DNA of 55,076 nucleotides, from NCBI GenBank assembly GCA_003427395.1, contig BFEA01000004.1, forward strand, positions 8,428,303 through 8,483,378. The letters are read 5' to 3'. The notes beneath the pieces were generated by a model. That model saw only the letters and a list, made by a program, of their open reading frames with translations, ran no database searches and was not told the DNA's origin. The position numbers and the translations under genes are program-made. This document shows positions 5,002-48,302 of the stretch, one piece after another; within the stretch, counting starts at the first letter, position 1; each line of letters opens with the position of its first letter. This DNA is from Chara braunii (Eukaryota; Plantae; Charophyceae).

Positions 5002-5071
<70 letters not shown>

Positions 5072-5096
5072 NNNNNNNNNNNNNNNNNNNNNNNNN

Positions 5097-5152
<56 letters not shown>

Positions 5153-5183
5153 CTCTGTACACTAAAAAAAAGCATGACTGTAC

Positions 5184-5240
5184 CAGACTATTTCGTCGGA
5201 CTTTCACCCACTCATCAAGAGATTGAACCCCGACAGTCTG
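5184..5240 (-). ncRNA. Type III hammerhead ribozyme (complete fold, C3->U variant)
   Basis: Minus strand: CAGACUG-U-C | GGGGU UCA AUCUC UUGAUGA GUGGG UGAAAGU CCGAC GAAA UAGUCUG; stems I, II and III form; GUC cleavage triplet. Confidence 0.85.
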
Positions 5241-5573
5241 CCCAGGATGCATTTGACTGATGGATAAGGACTCACCACATCGCCCAGAGTTAGGGATACC
5301 CCTGAGAAAAGTGGTAGACTTTACTCACAACAACCTTGCAATCCTAGCAGACTGCCGGCCCAAACCCCTGACAAGAACGGTAGTAAGTCTCAGAAACTAA
5401 TCTGACACAGTCATAAAACCCACTCTACACACCCACTCAGCCATGGACACCCAATGGCATGACCACTAGTACGGTCCCGGCCCTAGCTGCATCGATCCGT
5501 TGAACGGGGAGCTTAGCAAGGTCGTGTTGTGTGTTGTCATATTCGCTATACACTCAAAAAAGCACGACTTTAC

Positions 5574-5613
5574 CAGACTGTTTCGTCGGACTTTCACCGA
5601 CTCATCAGGAGGT
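5574..5613 (-). ncRNA. Hammerhead ribozyme 3' portion with canonical core (lacks the cleavage-site strand)
   Basis: ACCUC CUGAUGA GUCGG UGAAAGU CCGAC GAAA CAGUCUG; exactly 390 bp from the first copy. Confidence 0.85.
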
Positions 5614-5640
5614 GTGTGTGTGTGTCTTGTTTTATCTTCT

Positions 5641-5790
5641 TGTTTTTTTTTTTCCTGTGTCAAGACGTAAAAAAATGTTAACTTCCTGCCAGCATTGATT
5701 GCCCTGGGGACCCAGGTGATTGACTGCGCAGGAGTGGAAGGGGGGGAGCCCCTTCAGCCCTGTGACCAGGCACTTGCAAGGAATATGAAC
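5641..5790 (-). mobile_element. LINE 3'-UTR fragment with poly(A)
   Basis: Reverse complement matches 38108-38198 of LINE C (gaag.ggctcccccc...cagtcaatc...gggcaatcaatgctggcagg); T-run at 5641-5653. Confidence 0.7.
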
Positions 5791-6253
5791 GAGAGCGATA
5801 GACAGATATCCAAGTTGCAAAATCACGAAGTAGTCCAGATAGTGATTTTTTATTTATTTATTTATTTATTTATTTATTTTTTTTGCGCCAACGCCATCGG
5901 TTAGCGCTCGGGCCCGCCCACACCACGTCGCGTCGCGCCGTACGGCTTCACTCAGCGGGACGCAAATTCGAAAACTTTCCCGCGCGCGATCTCCACGCGC
6001 TGACCCCATCGCTCGCCACCACCCGGGAAACACGCTCTGCGCGCTTCGCCCCATATGCTAGCCATCGCGCGGCGCCACGTCACGAAAGTGCCCTCCTAGG
6101 AGGGCCCAGAAAGGCGTGAAGGCCAGGAGTCGGAAGGAGGAGAGGAATGGGAAAGGGAGTATGAAGTAGAGGGAGAGAAGGAGAGGAGGAGAAGAAAAAG
6201 AGAGAGAGAGAGAGAAGAAAAAAGGAGGGGAAAGGGGGAGAGAGAGAGAGAGA

Positions 6254-6334
<81 letters not shown>

Positions 6335-8678
6335 GGAGAGAGAGCAAAAGAGAGAGAGAGAGAAGAAAGGGGGAGGAACCGCCCCGGAAGGGCGAACTGA
6401 GAAAGAACAAACGCGACCAAGAGAAAGTGGGGGAAAAGGACAACAGGAAGGAGTGTGAAATCCAAGTCCATCGACGGAAGCTGCTGGCGAACGAAGGGCC
6501 AAAGGAGAATTTTTTACGCAACACCCAAAACCGAAGATCGACGAGGAAGGAAACTCCTAAGGAGAAGCCAATCGAGAAGGCAAAAACGCGAGAGCAGAAG
6601 ACACACCAACATTTTCATTGGAATTGACAAGTGAGATCTACACCATACTTTTCTGACACAAGAGTCACTCTACAACACGATAGCATCTACTGATTCCATA
6701 ACAGTAACACAGACGTTTACCCACCGGCCCTAAAACTCTACCTAGACCCACTATCCCCATCCATCCACCGCCATCAACAACTTTCGCTCATCAACCTCGT
6801 CAAATCCCAGTTCTCTTCCCCCCATTCTCACCGTTTCGCCATTCGAGACCCCCTCCCCACCCCTTCGAGATTCCACACCACACGCAACATTCAACCACAA
6901 CATCCATCATCCAATAATTCCATCATGGACCCTCCTTCACCGACCCGACGACCACCCGAAGCCCAATCAGCCCCCCCCCGTACTCCCCTCCACCCTCCCA
7001 CGTCCCGATTTTCCCCCAGTCCCACTCTACACCCTCCTGGCACACAGACTACCCCCAATCAGAGCCCAGCCAAACCCCACCCTCTTCACACACCAAACCC
7101 AACCCCCCACCTACCCTGACTCTACCCGACCTCCGCCTTCCTGCCATCTCGATCCCAACTCCTTCTAACCTACTCCCGACTCAGCGACCACACCGATACC
7201 AGCAGTTCCCTACCCCGACCTCCCCTCACCCCCACCCCGGTGGCATACCATTCCAACCCCACCGGCACCCGGTTCCCATCCCGATCCCTTTTCCTATCCT
7301 CTACTCCGCTCCCACAGCTGAACCCACCTACTTCCCATCCCGACGCGATAATGATACCAACAACCATAACCCAGACTCCCCCCCATTTCCATCCTATCCA
7401 TACTCCCTCCTTCCCACACACTCCCCCCGATCTAAACCAAATCAACCACCAACCCCTCTCCAACTAGCCTCTACTCCCCCCCCCATCCCGTCCCCTCCAA
7501 CGGCCATACCACGGCCATCCCGGCCCAACTCAATCCCCCAACCCGTACCCTTTCTCATTCCGCCTCTATCTCGACCTTCCGCTTCGCCTACCGTGCGCCC
7601 TCCTAACACTTACACCATTAACAAGCGGCCACTTCCCTACGTCTACCAAATCTCAGATCGTGCACAATGTGTCCACCACCCAACCCCACCCCGAACACAT
7701 CTCGATCCGACCTTGCACCCCCCCCATTCTTATACACCCCGACCCACATCCTGAAGTCCCCCCGCTTCCACCCCACCCCCCCCAGTCCCCAGACCCTTCC
7801 CAACCCCGTCACCACCCGCCCCCTTCCCGACCATATACCTTTCTTCCCTCCACATCTATCACGTCCCCGATCCCGACCTCAGCCCGCACTCAACTTTTCC
7901 TTCTATCCAGCCTCCTTTCCTATCCTCTACCCCGCTCCCATAGTTGAACTTGCCTACTTCCCATCCCCACATGATAACGATTCCAACAACCATAACCCAG
8001 ACTCCCATCCACTACCACCCTATCCATACTCCCTCCTTCCCACACCCTCCCCCCGAATCGTGCTCCTTTCCAACACTTACATCGTTACCAATCTATTACT
8101 CTCCTACGTCTACCAAACCTCAGATCGCGTGCAATCTGTCCACCATCCATCCCCACCCCATACACATCTCGATCGGACCTTTCACCCACCCCGTCCCTAC
8201 CCAATTCCTGCCTTACCCCCCCCCCCCTTCCCATTCTGCCTCCCCCCCCCGATCTCTCCCAACTCCCACACCGCCGCCGTCCCGATCCCAGAAAACTTTG
8301 ACCAGATCCCCCTCCACTCCCACCTACACCACAATCTGATCTCGCCCCACACCCAACCCCACCAGATTCGAACCACCTTACACCTCCACTCCACCACCAC
8401 ACCCATCCCAATCCGAGGCCCCCCAAATCCTATACCACCGACGTCCAGACCCCAACTCCACCCCTTCCCGCTCTCACCCCACCTGTCACCCCGCACCCGT
8501 TGGGCTTCCATCCCAACCGGAGCAGGGTCTAACGTCACACTCATCCCCATCCAGCCCACGGAATTCCCCTCCCCACTAACAACCCAAGATTCCCCCAATT
8601 GTCACCCAGCTCCCCCACATTAAAAGCACACCCAGCAAAACTTAGTCGGAAGTCCAATATCAGCGCCACACAACAAAG

Positions 8679-20480: not shown

Positions 20481-21947
20481 CAGGTGCTTTCCCCTTCAGT
20501 CTTCGTTCGTACGCAGCCACGATCTGAGGTCCCGTTCTGACGAGCTCCTCTCTTGTGAAACAACGATCTTTTTTTGGATCGGTATGATGCCTGAATCTGA
20601 CCCGGTACTCCCTCATAGGTTTGGGCGGTCTTCCCCTGCCCACAGGCTTGGGAACAGGCTAGTCTCTATGTTCCACAATGTCGTCGACATCCACATTGTC
20701 ATCCATGGTTGGGGACAGCATTGATCTCCTGGATGGGAACTGATTTGTCTCAGCGAAAGGTTCAAGCTTGGAAGCGTGGAATACAGGGTATGTGCGCAGA
20801 TGACCAGGGATTCTTATGATATATGAGGGTCCATCCAAATCACCACCCACAATATCCAGGACTTCCCAAGGACCAAAATACTGTGGCATCAGCTTTCTAG
20901 AGATTCCAAATTCCTGACCCAGTTCACTAGCCTTTACCCAGACGCGGTCCCCTACCTGAAATGTGGACTGTCGTCCGTGTTTGTTCTCAGAGGCAATCAT
21001 TGCTTCTTGAGATTTCCTGATGTGTTCGACAGCCTGCTGCAACAACTTCTCATAGTGGACACCAAACTCTATGGTTCCAGGTGTTGCAGTTGGTCGGTTT
21101 TCAGGAAGGAGGAAGTCTCGCGCATGTCTAGGCTTCCAACCCGAATGCAGCTGATTAGGACTGACACCAGTGGTGTTGTGTTCAGCGTTATTGTACAGGC
21201 TGGCAATGAGAGGCAGTTTCTCATCCCAGTCATCGTGGCTGGGCTTTATATAATGCTTCAGCAAATGCTGCACCACACGGCTCATCTGTTCCGCTTGGTC
21301 GGTGGCTTCGGGATGATTCCCCTAAGTCAATTGAAGATGAGTACCCATTTGTTCAGCGTCTTTCTTCCACATCTCACTTGTGAACCGGACATCTCTATCA
21401 CTAACGATGGTCTTAGGCAGTCCAAAGTCACACACCCAGTTACCCATAAATAACTCGATGACGTGTGTGTTCGGTCTTGGCTGTCTCAGGCATGGCAATT
21501 AGTCTAGCGTACTTGGTGAACCTGTCCACTATAACGAAGATATGCCGTTTGCCAGTCTTGCTGGTCACAAGAGTGTCCATAAAATCCACGGAGACACTTT
21601 GTCCTAGACCCGCAGGAATGGGCAAGTGGAGCTTAAGTTCGCGGCTTGTCCCGTTGACAGACTTGACAAGTCTGAACATACTTCTTTGCATCGTCTAGCA
21701 TACTAGGCCACCAGAAACGTTGAACTACATTTGCACTAGTCTTCTTGTAGCCGAAGTGACTAGTTGCATCATGACACTCCCCTAAAAATAATCTATGTAG
21801 AATCTCACTAGACGAAACACAAAATCTCTTAAACCTTGCCTTTTCAAGAAAGATTAACCCATCCACCATCACAAACTCATCTGGTGCGGACTTATCTTGA
21901 GCCTCTAGTCTGCGGATGATGTCCATCATGACGAGATCTTCCTTATT
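20481..21947 (-). pseudogene. Ty3/gypsy (chromovirus) integrase plus chromodomain, degenerate
   Basis: H..HFG..C..C zinc finger, SVDFM/VIVDRFTKY core, YFGPW (GPY/F), VFHASKL, chromodomain-like DVDDIVEHR...QIVAAYE. Confidence 0.92.
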
Positions 21948-22699
21948 GTACCAAATACCCTTACAAGGGTATTTGGCGTGCTTTTTGCAAGTCGCGCCGG
22001 TGCGGCCTCGTCCAAAGTTGACGGCGCGCTTGCGGGTGAGAGTTGAGTTAGCGCCCGGATGAGCAGCGCGCGCGGGCGTGTTGACGGCGAGGTGCAACCC
22101 TGCGAAGCCTGGGTGTGTGCGGCATCACCGGCCAGCGGGACGCGTGGGCCCCTCGCCCCCTTGCTCTTTCTTGTGTCCCTCGCGTTTATTTCTATTTTTA
22201 TTATATATGTTATTATTATTCCTATTTTTTATGTTGTTGACTCAGGCGACCGGTTCCACGACTGACGTCAGGACCTACGGGCCCGGCTCACCTATTACAT
22301 TGTCCAACACAGGTGGCCGACACGACAGTCGTGGACCTTGAGCATGCATCTTTTTTGGCAGGGCCATTCGGGTCTCCTGCGTGTCAGGGAAGTTGGCAAA
22401 ATTCCTTTATCCTACCCAATTTGGAAGCACGGACAGAACAGGTCAACATTCTTGAGAGCGGTGGGGTCCGTGGTCGTGGCTTCCTTCACTTCCCATTTGG
22501 AGAGCGTCGATAGCCCAGAGTGGAAAGAAATTGGAGGACATTCCGAGTGGGCCTGTGGGACTGCAGCCCAAGGGTGGCGGGGGCCGCTGTGGGGCACCGT
22601 CTGCCAGCCACGATCTGTTGTGAGAGGTTTGAATGTGAACATGCCCACAAGGTCCCGCTAGATGGTGAACCATGTCTGGGCACAGTCGGCGGGGGCCGC

Positions 22700-23035
22700 A
22701 TTGTGGCCCTGTTCGCATGTACCCCCCCCCATACTTCGGTCTTCAATAGTCTCAATTGAATCTTGGTTGCTACCACCAAAATCTGTGTTGGGGCCCACTT
22801 CACCCAGCCTTGCTGCAAACTCCGCGCCCTCCTGCTTGCTGCAGCGTCGGAGTAGCCCCGACGGCCGTGCATAGGTCGTGCGCTTCAGTGCTGCTCATTT
22901 TCCGGGCTGATAGATTCGGCAGATGAGTTTGTTGCACATTCCGAGCGGATTTCGACTTCCATGACCACCATCCTGCTGCCTGTATAGGCTGCCACTCCCT
23001 TGCGTTGTCTCGGTTAGCGCACAGTTTGGCACCAG
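22700..23035 (-). pseudogene. Degenerate nuclear LSU (25S/26S) rRNA fragment
   Basis: Matches remembered reverse-complement LSU stretches: cttcggtcttcaa..ctaccaccaa.atctg, gattcggcag.tgagtt, gcggatttcgacttccatgaccacc.tcctgctg, gttagcgc.cagtt.ggcacc. Confidence 0.85.
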
Positions 23036-25974
23036 CTTGGAGACAAGTAAAAAGGGGGCAGAGGTACCTGGGCACGTTTCCGCACCAGGTGCATTCGCAG
23101 ATAAAGGAAGAACGTGGCGATGGGAAAAGTTGCTATGGCGGGAGCAAGGATCATGTTACTTACCCATTCCTTGATGGAAACGGGTGAGTAAAGAGATTAA
23201 ACAGGGGTTCTTTGGCCGGCAAGTCGAATGGTAGGGTCAGAATGGCAGGAGAGCCAGTAGAAAGGGAGGTTAGCAGAGAAACGTGTGCGTGGAGATGGCG
23301 GGGAACAAAGGAGAAGAAGGGTGGGAAACACATATCGCACCTGTTTCTTAGCAGAAACGAGCAAGAGAGGATGCGATTTTGGGGTTTTAGCCCTGTGCAA
23401 ATCGATTGGTGAGGTTAGATTGGTCGGTAGATCAATAGTTTTGGTGTTGTGTGGATGGTGAACTGCACGTGAGGTTGGAGCGCTTCGAATAAGAAAGGGG
23501 TAAGATGTCATGCACGATTGAAGGAGGTGAGTAGGAGAGTTCGTTCTCATTTTGCCAAGTTTGGTGAGTAGGGGGTGTTTGATAAGAGAGAGAGAGCACT
23601 TACCCAGGAAGGTTGAGGATGCAGGAGAATTGAATACTCACAAAGCGCTGCACATTCCCATGTTCTAGTGAAAGATTCAGTCATGGACCTGGCTCGATGG
23701 GAGGTACTGCAGCGAGTGACTTCAACAACACGTATTTCTTCTGCTTTCTAGCGGGAGATTCATACTCTCTATCTCTCTGCGCGGATGGTTGGCAAGCAGT
23801 GTATATTTCCATGTTCTAACGAAAGATTCATGCCCACTCTGAAAGTTGGAGAATGAAGGAGCGCAACCCTCTTGCTGCCTATCCCTGTCGGAGATAGGGA
23901 CCTCATCCCAGTTCGCTAGCCATTTTCGACCACTGAGACGTTCATCTTCGGGCTTATCGTTGTAGCTTGCCGACGCGCTAGTTATTGTGGACGCCCTTAT
24001 TCAAGGTGCTGGTGTTGCATGTGCGGTGCTTGTTCTCAATACATCGCCTTGACTTTTTTTTTTTGGAACTGCACGTGCGTGCGCATGGAGAGAGAGAATG
24101 ATGGCCTACCTGAGAAGACTAGCGATACAGAAATAATCGAGAATTGAGCTACGGAAGATTCGGGCTCATCGTGCATGTCTGAAGAGGGTGCTTGTTGCGG
24201 GCGATAAAGAGGAAGAGGGAGAGAGACTTACCTCTTCCCGATGTTGTGGACCGTGGTGGTCATCACGCTGCTGGTAGTCGTCTCCGCTCATTGCTTTTCT
24301 GCTCGCGGTCGCCGCTGAAGCCAGGCTGGTCGTTCCATGGCCGCGACTTCCCTTTTGAGCGCAGTCGCTCCCTTGGCCCGTGTTTGTTCTCCTTGTCTGA
24401 ATTCGCATGAACCTGGCTCTGTCATATGACCAGGTGCATTGCGGAAAGCAAGAACTTATTGTGGAAATCAGGCAATTATCAAGGAGGCAGCCAGCCTGAG
24501 CTAGGCAACAGAGAGGAGAGGGGCTCACTTGTTGGAACTTGCTGAGATACTCAGGCGGAGTTTGACTCATGATGGAGGATAACGAGTGCCATACCGCGTG
24601 TACAGCATGAACTGAGTGAACCAGAGAAAGGGGCAGCCGAGAAAGAAGAGGGAGCGAGAAAGACTGGTAGCGAGCAGAGTAGGGAGAGAAGGGAGGCAGT
24701 AGTGTGGGGCCAAGAGATTCATCTGGTGGAGTTGTTTGCGGTCAAGAGGTTGGACGTTGCTGGCCATACGATAGGTCACAGGTCTTCGTTGTTGTTTCTT
24801 TCTTTTTGGGTAGACCGTTACTGTTATTTGGTGGCTACTACTGCTAATTCAACTGCAAGTTGTTGCGACTGTGGGAGCGGCATACTCTACTCCATACGCT
24901 ACTACATAACAACGTCCTACAGTTGACTTCAGCAGCATGTTTTTGTTGAGTTATGGTAGCACGCTTGTTAACCACCTGGCAGTACGCTTATGAAAGGTAA
25001 AGAAAACGATTGTCGTATATTCTTTGTGCACTTTTACTCAAATGTGGCCGTCGGGTTGCGCAGTGAAAGTTGGAGTCGGTTTGAGTCGGGTTACTACAAG
25101 GCTACTTACCTTTGGAGTGTTGATCATTGCTATGTTCCTCACCGCCAAAAGGATAAGTCGGATTGTTGGTTGCTCTGTTTTCAGCAGCTACTACGACTGT
25201 GTCCCTGGGTGTCGTTGTTGATGGGTCCTGTTGTGCACAGCCACTGAGTACACAGTGTTTTGTTGTGCCCTTACTGTGTGACACCGCAGCTGCTGCAATT
25301 TAGTATTACGGCAGCTTGCAACTGTTGCACACTGCAACATTTTTCCTACATTCGAATAAAACACAGGTGGATTGTGCTCTATTTGAAAGCGAACCTTCTA
25401 GGTTACATTTGGCCTAAGGGGAGGTACAGTGATTTTGAGGGAGAGACCCGAATCTGCAAAGGAAAGGGCGTCACCGTTGCGACTTGGTTGGTCATCGTTT
25501 TAGTCATCTTCGTGGCGTTTGAATGCGGTTCGGATGTTTTTGTTGCGGTCTGGTCGCCATTGTGGGGCCCTCAGGCGCACCAAGGTTTCTAAGCCCGCTC
25601 GTGCGAGTTTGAGTGCATCCCTTTTGGGTCTTAGCGACTAAAAGAATTTATCTCTGCCTTTCTTATTCAAGGTCGGGTCTATTGGTTCAGAGAGAAAGGC
25701 GGCAGGCGGGATTGAAACCCGTAATCTGTGTCAAGGCCTCTATGGGAGGTTCGCCCCACCGATTGCGGGAGCTCTGTTGGGGTTCAGGCGGGACCCTGGA
25801 GGCAAGGGACTTTAAGGTAGGCCGATGCAATCTCCCTTAGGATCCCGTATACCCCTATCTATATCACCCTTTATTCAGTTCTTCAACTGAATCAGCGAAA
25901 ATTTACTATGCTTGTTTAATTTCATTTTGCTTAAAATGGAATCCAAGATGTTTGCTTGCGATGATTTGAAATGG

Positions 25975-47394: not shown

Positions 47395-47937
47395 GTCCTT
47401 CAGGACATCCGTTAAAATTGGAACGATACAGAGAAGATTTTTTTTTATTTTTTTTTTTTCTATATTCTTCTCTCNACTTCTGTTTTTGCCTTTCACTACT
47501 ACTCCTAAGGCTATCTAGAGGGGACCCCTGCAAGCATAGTTTCCTCTCACTGTGAAGGGGAGATTTCATGTTGCCCCTTGCCCCTAATGTTGAGGGTATA
47601 GGGTTGGGGCCGCCAGTGGGGGTCTGGCTAACACAAAGACCGAGACCTGCCAGTAGCTGCGCCTCCCTTTCTCATCGTCCCCCACCCCTCATCCAGTAGC
47701 AGCAGTAGCTATGGCCAACACTCTCCCACACACCACACACAACCCACTCGCACTCGCACTCACACCCATGTTGGTCATAGATTCCACTAATACCGATCAG
47801 GAGTATCCTGAGGACTATCCCAATTCGTTGGCACTAAGTGCGCCGCAGGCTGTCATGGGGCTTGAACCCACAACCTCCTGATGGCATGGCCCCTGCACAC
47901 AAGGATGACACGCACAAATCAAGAAATGGTCCAAATT
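47395..47937 (+). pseudogene. U6: U6 snRNA retrocopy split by an insertion (U6 at 47395-47439 and 47884-47937)
   Basis: gacatccg.taaaattggaacgatacagagaagatt ... gcatggcccctgc.caaggatgacacgcacaaatc.agaaatggtccaaatt; A-rich tail; flanks agggcc(c)t. Confidence 0.92.
47440..47883 (-). mobile_element. tRNA-derived SINE, 5'-truncated, inserted in U6
   Basis: Poly(T) at left; right end on minus strand caggaggttgtgggttcaagcccc is a tRNA variable arm/T-arm. Confidence 0.75.
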
Positions 47938-48302
47938 GAAAAGAAAAGAAAAAAAGAAAAAAAAAGGGCCTCCAGGGCCTCAACCATTCAAAAAACCACT
48001 GCTCCCTGGGTTTCGGTTCCTAGACAGGTGAAAATATGTATGGGTCTTCCAGCAGGGCAGGTCTGGAGGTACTGGTGGTGGTTAATCAGGATGTGAACTC
48101 GTTGACAGTTACAAGTGTTCACCATTCAGCCCCATGGGCTGCGTGATCCTCTAGTACTTGACCTCGGCATGCAACTTGTTGGGGCTCTTTCGTAGGCACG
48201 CTCGTTTGCCTTTTGCCATGACCACTGACTTGCCAGTGGAATAGGAACCGGACTGATGCTCCCCAGAATGGAAAGGAGCCAGAACCATACGATTCTGTTT
48301 TC

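Follow-up and report, generated by a model that had tools for sequence, protein, structure and literature searches.

The charophyte Chara braunii hosts Penelope-like elements of the Chlamys type, in which canonical hammerhead ribozymes have been described for Chlamys-2_cBra, with a 3′ hammerhead, and for the EN-less PLE-X families (Craig et al. 2021, PMC8557442). Chlamys elements commonly target (CA)n and reach very high copy numbers in C. braunii, and the Naiad/Chlamys group leaves 5′-truncated, partial-tandem, and inverted copies (PMC8557442). The role of the hammerhead in Penelope-like elements is debated, with the processing of tandem transcripts on one side and mere parasitism on the other (Craig et al. 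2021, PMC8557442).

Two kinds of retrozyme provide the other points of reference. Plant LTR retrozymes contain 300-400-bp LTRs with hammerheads, a tRNA-Met primer binding site, and a 4-bp target duplication, and give an RNA of 600-1000 nt (PMC4918200). Animal non-LTR retrozymes have type I hammerheads, are arranged as uniform tandem monomers, and yield abundant circular RNAs (PMC7229834). A 2026 preprint derives the animal retrozymes from Penelope pLTRs (bioRxiv 10.64898/2026.07.22.740005), and the general idea of a Penelope derivation is therefore already known. A full-text literature search for short hammerhead families in Chara returned no paper besides Craig et al. 2021.

The locus considered here lies in a 55,076-nt stretch of C. 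braunii DNA (assembly GCA_003427395.1, contig BFEA01000004.1), which is referred to as the window. The original prediction described a 390-nt non-coding unit bounded by type III hammerheads. The locus is probably better described as two adjacent, 5′-truncated, and mutated copies of an abundant non-coding retroelement family that inserts into microsatellites with Penelope (Chlamys)-type machinery.

Hammerhead motifs and layout of the locus

The complete hammerhead of the locus is read on the minus strand from 5240 to 5184. Direct reading confirms the type III motif predicted there, with a cut between 5232 and 5231. An 8-bp stem III leads into a GUC with C17 at 5232 and a 4-bp stem I hairpin; UUGAUGAG and a stem II of 5 bp, one of them a G.G mismatch, come next, and GAAA and the returning 3′ strand of stem III close the motif. 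Stem III is open and stems I and II are closed hairpins, which is the type III topology. This is the only complete hammerhead at the locus, and its core is not intact: the C3 position is U (5218), stem II contains the G.G mismatch (5209), and position 15.2 is U (5190).

A second core, CUGAUGAG, is found at 5608->5601, exactly 390 nt upstream of the core of the full copy, and is perfect, as had been reported. The exact core pattern is matched at 5608->5581, and this partial copy (5608->5574) also has a perfect stem II, GAAAC, and the downstream strand of stem III. Missing from it are the cleavage site, the upstream strand of stem III, and the greater part of stem I. Its start, at about 5613, lies 8 nt 3′ of the expected cut position. 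The correctly spaced core pattern matches twice in the 55-kb window against 0.08 matches expected, and none of 100 shuffles reaches two. The hammerhead motifs at 5240->5184 and 5613->5574 are genuine.

Covariance searches and folding add caveats. In the Rfam Hammerhead_3 search suggested with the original prediction, the partial copy scores 18.7 bits, below the gathering threshold of 48.5, and the full copy has no match; across the whole window, Rfam at gathering and E-value thresholds reports no hammerhead above threshold. Folded as a hammerhead, the genomic full copy has a computed energy of -13.1 kcal/mol, 7.7 worse than its minimum free energy of -20.8. For the family-majority sequence of 5182-5242 (minus strand), pairing of the cleavage-site and stem I letters with the 3′ strand of stem II is computed at -23.1 kcal/mol against -20.9 for the hammerhead fold. 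This alternative pairing could be a folding switch or an artefact of the model. Because copy 1 has no cleavage site and copy 2 combines U3 with a broken stem II, the locus is probably dead. The earlier suspicion that the genomic copy is inactive is likewise judged probable.

Read along the minus strand, the locus begins with an (AC)7 run (5612..5625), a remnant of the (CA)n target upstream of copy 1; the run overlaps the start of that copy, whose first 1-2 nt are ambiguous. Copy 1 (5533..5613, about 80 nt) comprises the core and a 3′ tail and is delimited by sequence reading, alignment, and Rfam Hammerhead_3. At its 5′ end, about 5613 and straight after (AC)7, stands ACCUC, which belongs to loop 1 or to stem I (3′ strand). 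The hammerhead part of the copy (5613->5574) continues with the core CUGAUGAG, stem II, and GAAAC and closes with stem III (3′ strand); the family 3′ tail follows, with the last letters ...AUGACAAC. A degenerate 9-nt CA remnant (5524..5532, minus strand), recognized from sequence and alignment, separates copy 1 from copy 2.

Copy 2 (5151..5523, minus strand) is non-coding, about 373 nt long, and delimited by its sequence and by a gradient in read depth; it contains the full hammerhead (5184..5240) and a 3′ tail. It is followed by an (AC)n microsatellite (5097..5150, minus strand) that is interrupted by an assembly gap at 5072-5096, and a (GA)n run occupies 5004-5071 on the far side of the gap. 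Microsatellite sequence on either flank of the locus would mask any 4-bp target site duplication. Copies 1 and 2 have only about 70-90 nt in common, at 84-87% identity. Among the window ORFs in all frames, no frame is open across the element, in agreement with the statement that it holds no meaningful ORF.

Related copies and public reads

Further copies were sought in about 265 kb of non-gap Chara DNA, made up of the window and loci L007-L013 from GCA_003427395.1. The survey contains one further copy of the (CA)n family, at L007 30612-30777, which corresponds to element positions 234-399 at 91.6% identity. Its 5′ start, at element position 234, directly follows a long (CA)n. Alignment of this copy with the two window copies gives a family 3′ terminus ...GUGUAUAG.G.AUAUGACAAC, and in copy 1, copy 2, and the L007 copy alike this terminus is followed by (AC)n. 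The adjoining interval L007:30778-31146 is an insertion of roughly 370 nt in hammerhead loop 1, composed of 57-nt and 107-nt tandem units that resemble a degenerate ribozyme core with stem II.

A sister family has its ribozyme core in common with the window family and differs in its tail, which is 70 nt long with the last letters ...GUGACGA. It is located in (TA)n and is represented by 11 copies across L008, L009, and L010. One head-to-head pair (L008 9036-9116 against 9025-8910) consists of an inverted 5′-truncated copy abutting a nearly full short copy. A third, decayed hammerhead element at L008:74690-75010 (minus strand) has lost its GAAA box and stands after (CT)n within a Ty3/gypsy pol region. 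At about L008 74750 (minus strand), stem III of this third family pairs U with A at the position of a C-G pair in the window family, a compensatory change seen in a single case.

The sister family has tandem pairs at more than one place (L008 23813/23978 and L010 14876/15005), and Penelope-like elements typically form partial tandems (PMC8557442). Both observations suit the reading that a single Penelope-type integration made the two window copies as a partial tandem, in which copy 1 would be the pseudo-LTR or 'tail' of copy 2, in place of two insertions made independently into one microsatellite. This reading is nevertheless unlikely, as the two copies differ by 13-16% in their common part, too much for one template unless the event is old and decay was uneven, and as microsatellite letters stand between them.

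The 5′ ends of the copies are not evenly distributed. The 5′ half of the ribozyme is kept in only 3 copies in the approximately 265 kb, and 12 copies lack it. Six of these 12, copy 1 of the window included, start at +9 to +13 from the cut, a 5-nt zone that falls in loop 1 or in stem I (3′ strand). The other six have starts scattered further 3′, and none of the 12 begins at +1 to +8; these 5′-end statistics rest on a small sample of copies.

Public reads were mapped on 5150-6400 from two raw oligo-dT RNA runs, one DNA contig set, and one contig set of uncertain kind that is guessed to be RNA. At 5218, 5209, and 5190, the majority letter on the minus strand is C in each case, which restores C3, the stem II pair, and C15.2. 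The majority of reads also has a canonical or pairing letter at stem I position 5222, and across these four positions such letters make up about 70-100% of reads, varying by run and place. Since the majority letters restore all three defects, the family hammerhead is canonical, with the conserved CUGANGA, GAAA, A15.1-U16.1, and NUH triplet, and copy 2 is a decayed member of the family.

The hammerhead module is extremely abundant in C. braunii. Summed contig depth, which is not equal to copy number, reaches about 6x10^5 across the core (5570-5611), whereas the unique flank (5864-6200) has 6-60. Within copy 2, DNA contig depth falls from about 10^5 (5234-5275) to 434 (5486-5527), a drop of more than 100-fold toward the 5′ end, as expected from a 5′ truncation series and not from a uniform monomer. 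For many reads and contigs the match stops at 5528, beyond which they run as (TG)n (plus strand); these ends are the 3′ terminus and (CA)n of other copies of the family.

Joints that go back along the element, for example from 5613 to 5232, occur in both DNA contigs and RNA, and some of them hold the missing stem I letters between their two sides. They are the intact hammerheads of other copies, split across the two window copies, and not circle junctions. Such joints had been proposed as a sign of a circular RNA, and they are rejected as evidence for one because DNA contigs contain them as well.

These observations bear directly on the model first put forward for the locus, in which a slightly over-unit-length copy was reverse-transcribed from a circular or multimeric 390-nt self-cleaving RNA, making the element a compact type III retrozyme. 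The two cores do share one orientation at a spacing of 390 nt, the intervening sequence has a stable fold (z = -3.5), and back-going joint reads exist. A CA remnant and the family 3′ terminus nevertheless lie between the copies, the L007 copy starts after (CA)n at a different internal point, depth is uneven over the supposed unit, and the back-joints have the explanation given above. The arrangement is seen only once, and the sampled Chara loci contain no uniform tandem arrays. The locus thus consists of two copies that share a microsatellite and differ in their 5′ ends, and is not a 1.17-mer of a circle.

The model of a 390-nt circle is largely refuted, and a retrozyme of this kind has a very low probability. 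What had been taken for a 390-nt monomer is two separate copies, each with the family 3′ tail and (CA)n, over which depth varies more than 100-fold. One part of the proposed derivation from a self-cleaved or circular RNA of about 390 nt survives, in that a short copy starting just 3′ of the cut fits a self-cleaved template; the circle and the monomer do not. The broader description is supported: the repeat family is non-coding and reverse-transcribed, has a type III hammerhead, and lacks LTRs.

Expression of the locus itself is not visible. Only 2-3% of the mapped RNA reads are at least 99% alike, about 90% of those continue into unlike sequence, and the flank has no RNA depth in the oligo-dT runs; from the scarcity of near-identical reads and the silent flank it follows that the locus is not visibly expressed. 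Over 5150-6400, RNA reads from the oligo-dT libraries form no pile-up of ends at the cleavage site or elsewhere, and cleavage has no direct sign in these libraries.

Proposed origin of the copies

The preferred reading, a family of 5′-truncated copies made by Penelope-type machinery, begins from the shape of the copies. The family hammerhead sits about 40 nt before the RNA 3′ end, and copies stop at a constant 3′ terminus, after which (CA)n begins, while their variable 5′ starts directly follow (CA)n. A fixed 3′ end combined with ragged 5′ ends suggests target-primed reverse transcription starting at the 3′ tail, which would generate the copies. The enzyme would most likely be supplied by a Chlamys-type Penelope-like element with an N-terminal GIY-YIG plus RT, and the short non-coding copies would be truncated or non-autonomous products of this machinery. 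The window family displays the insertion features of the Chlamys type, namely a microsatellite target, 5′ truncation, partial tandems, and inverted truncated copies.

No Penelope-like ORF with GIY-YIG plus RT is present in the window or in the approximately 265 kb of sampled Chara DNA. The GIY-YIG motif was sought with a regular expression over six frames in the window and four loci, and Pfam searches of 26 ORFs returned only LINE, Ty3/gypsy, gag, and DUF659 matches. A further search at the protein level yielded a single match, to a LINE protein of Chara. The window element would be at best a non-autonomous or truncated Penelope-like copy, and its putative link to a particular autonomous Chlamys element is drawn from the literature and from architecture.

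A SINE-like element mobilised by a microsatellite-targeting LINE would share several of these properties, since a fixed 3′ end, 5′ truncation, and the absence of an ORF also match LINE dependence, and LINEs are abundant around the element. This origin is very unlikely by comparison with the Penelope-like one. Searches of the element against RNA families detect no tRNA, 5S, or 7SL head, and the tail of the element is shared by no LINE in the window or the sampled loci. The neighbouring LINE has an A-rich/(GAA)n tail and not (CA)n, and head-to-head inverted truncated pairs are a trait of Penelope-like elements. The missing pol III head, the lack of a LINE with the element's tail, and the A-rich tail of the neighbouring LINE together make a LINE partner less likely.

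The neighbourhood of the element contains other repeats and RNA fragments. The LINE reverse transcriptases of the window have their best protein matches, at 58-80% identity, in CBR_g proteins of C. braunii. Two U6 snRNA-like fragments, separated by 440 nt on the plus strand (47395-47439 and 47880-47940), score 35 and 31 bits against a gathering threshold of 44 and may be either pseudogenes of U6 or copies made by a LINE. Next to decayed Ty3/gypsy integrase ORFs (20659-22097, minus strand) there is a 28S rRNA fragment of 200 nt (22845-23042, minus strand, 98 bits).

Within the Penelope-type reading, the hammerhead would also cut the template RNA in vivo. Self-cleavage of the family ribozyme is predicted from its sequence and indirectly supported by the copies that start 9-13 nt 3′ of the predicted cut. 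If the template cleaves itself, many copies, copy 1 among them, would represent only the 3′ cleavage fragment, starting 9-13 nt past the cut. The clustering of 5′ ends at this distance and not at the cut itself speaks against the explanation as it stands and requires an extra assumption. The shortfall of 9-13 nt may be due to microhomology joining in loop 1 (CA in the window family) or to loss of the terminal stem I hairpin.

A stronger version of this proposal is that the 3′ fragment cut in vivo, which consists of the remainder of the ribozyme and a 40-70-nt tail, is an efficient template, from which thousands of copies have been inserted into (CA)n and (TA)n. This version is plausible but somewhat doubtful. 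If it holds, the genome would preserve, in fossil form, a record of ribozyme cleavage that took place in vivo during a Penelope-type life cycle, and the family would be a green-lineage, type III counterpart to the animal non-LTR retrozymes. Copies piling up just 3′ of the predicted cut would provide a sequence-only readout of cleavage before reverse transcription, and such a family would tie plant-type (type III) hammerheads to non-LTR, Penelope-style mobility. The locus itself is one decayed example, and the family-level question is moderately interesting.

Comparison with described hammerhead elements

Exact-pattern scans with the core and stem II over metagenome and viral contigs found no member of the family outside Chara and matched only unrelated phage or environmental hammerheads. 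On phage-like contigs of 19-21 kb, a type III hammerhead lies just upstream of an ORF (L002:8190-8244 and L004:3440-3494; Rfam Hammerhead_3, 53.6 bits), and the IMG/VR contigs L005 and L006 give the same phage-type finding. Two 2.47-kb metagenome contigs (L001:1520-1575 and L003:1373-1401) have the core and stem II of the Chara family as part of a possible type III hammerhead below the Rfam threshold. The phage hammerheads of L002 and L004 agree letter for letter with the Chara family in the core and in stem II with its loop, whereas their flanks and stems I and III are unrelated. The identity of stem II between phage and Chara looks like convergence and not homology.

The window element resembles the plant LTR retrozymes (Cervera, Urbina and de la Pena 2016, PMC4918200) in its type III core, which is the same, in a very similar stem II, in being non-coding, and in its occurrence in the green lineage. 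Unlike those retrozymes, it has no pair of cleavage sites delimiting an RNA of 600-1000 nt. A plant LTR retrozyme is excluded at this locus by a repeat of only about 70-90 nt, by an upstream hammerhead without a cleavage site, and by the absence of a tRNA-Met primer binding site, to which the element has no match even when up to 2 mismatches are tolerated.

With the animal non-LTR retrozymes, the window family shares short non-coding hammerhead repeats and a probable dependence on Penelope. It differs from them in that its hammerhead is type III and its copies are dispersed, 5′-truncated, and embedded in microsatellites. An animal-type non-LTR retrozyme is likewise excluded, given the type III hammerhead and copies of unequal length parted by a CA remnant in place of uniform tandem monomers.

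The original prediction held that the family was possibly undescribed in this lineage, which is at odds with the hammerhead-bearing Chlamys Penelope-like elements already published for C. braunii (PMC8557442). It also named, as a reading to be set against its own, the possibility that the unit is the pLTR of a Penelope element. Because the published Chlamys elements of C. braunii both carry hammerheads and target (CA)n (PMC8557442), this possibility likely applies in substance. The likeness to Chlamys elements, compared by description, extends to the host, a canonical hammerhead near the 3′ end, (CA)n insertion, 5′ truncation, partial tandems, inverted truncated copies, and high copy number. 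Unlike Chlamys elements, the window family has neither ORF1 nor a GIY-YIG-RT ORF at or near the locus, and its copies measure 80-370 nt. Short non-coding families and 5′ ends clustered by the cleavage site are features of the Chara copies that the account of Chlamys elements in PMC8557442 does not include.
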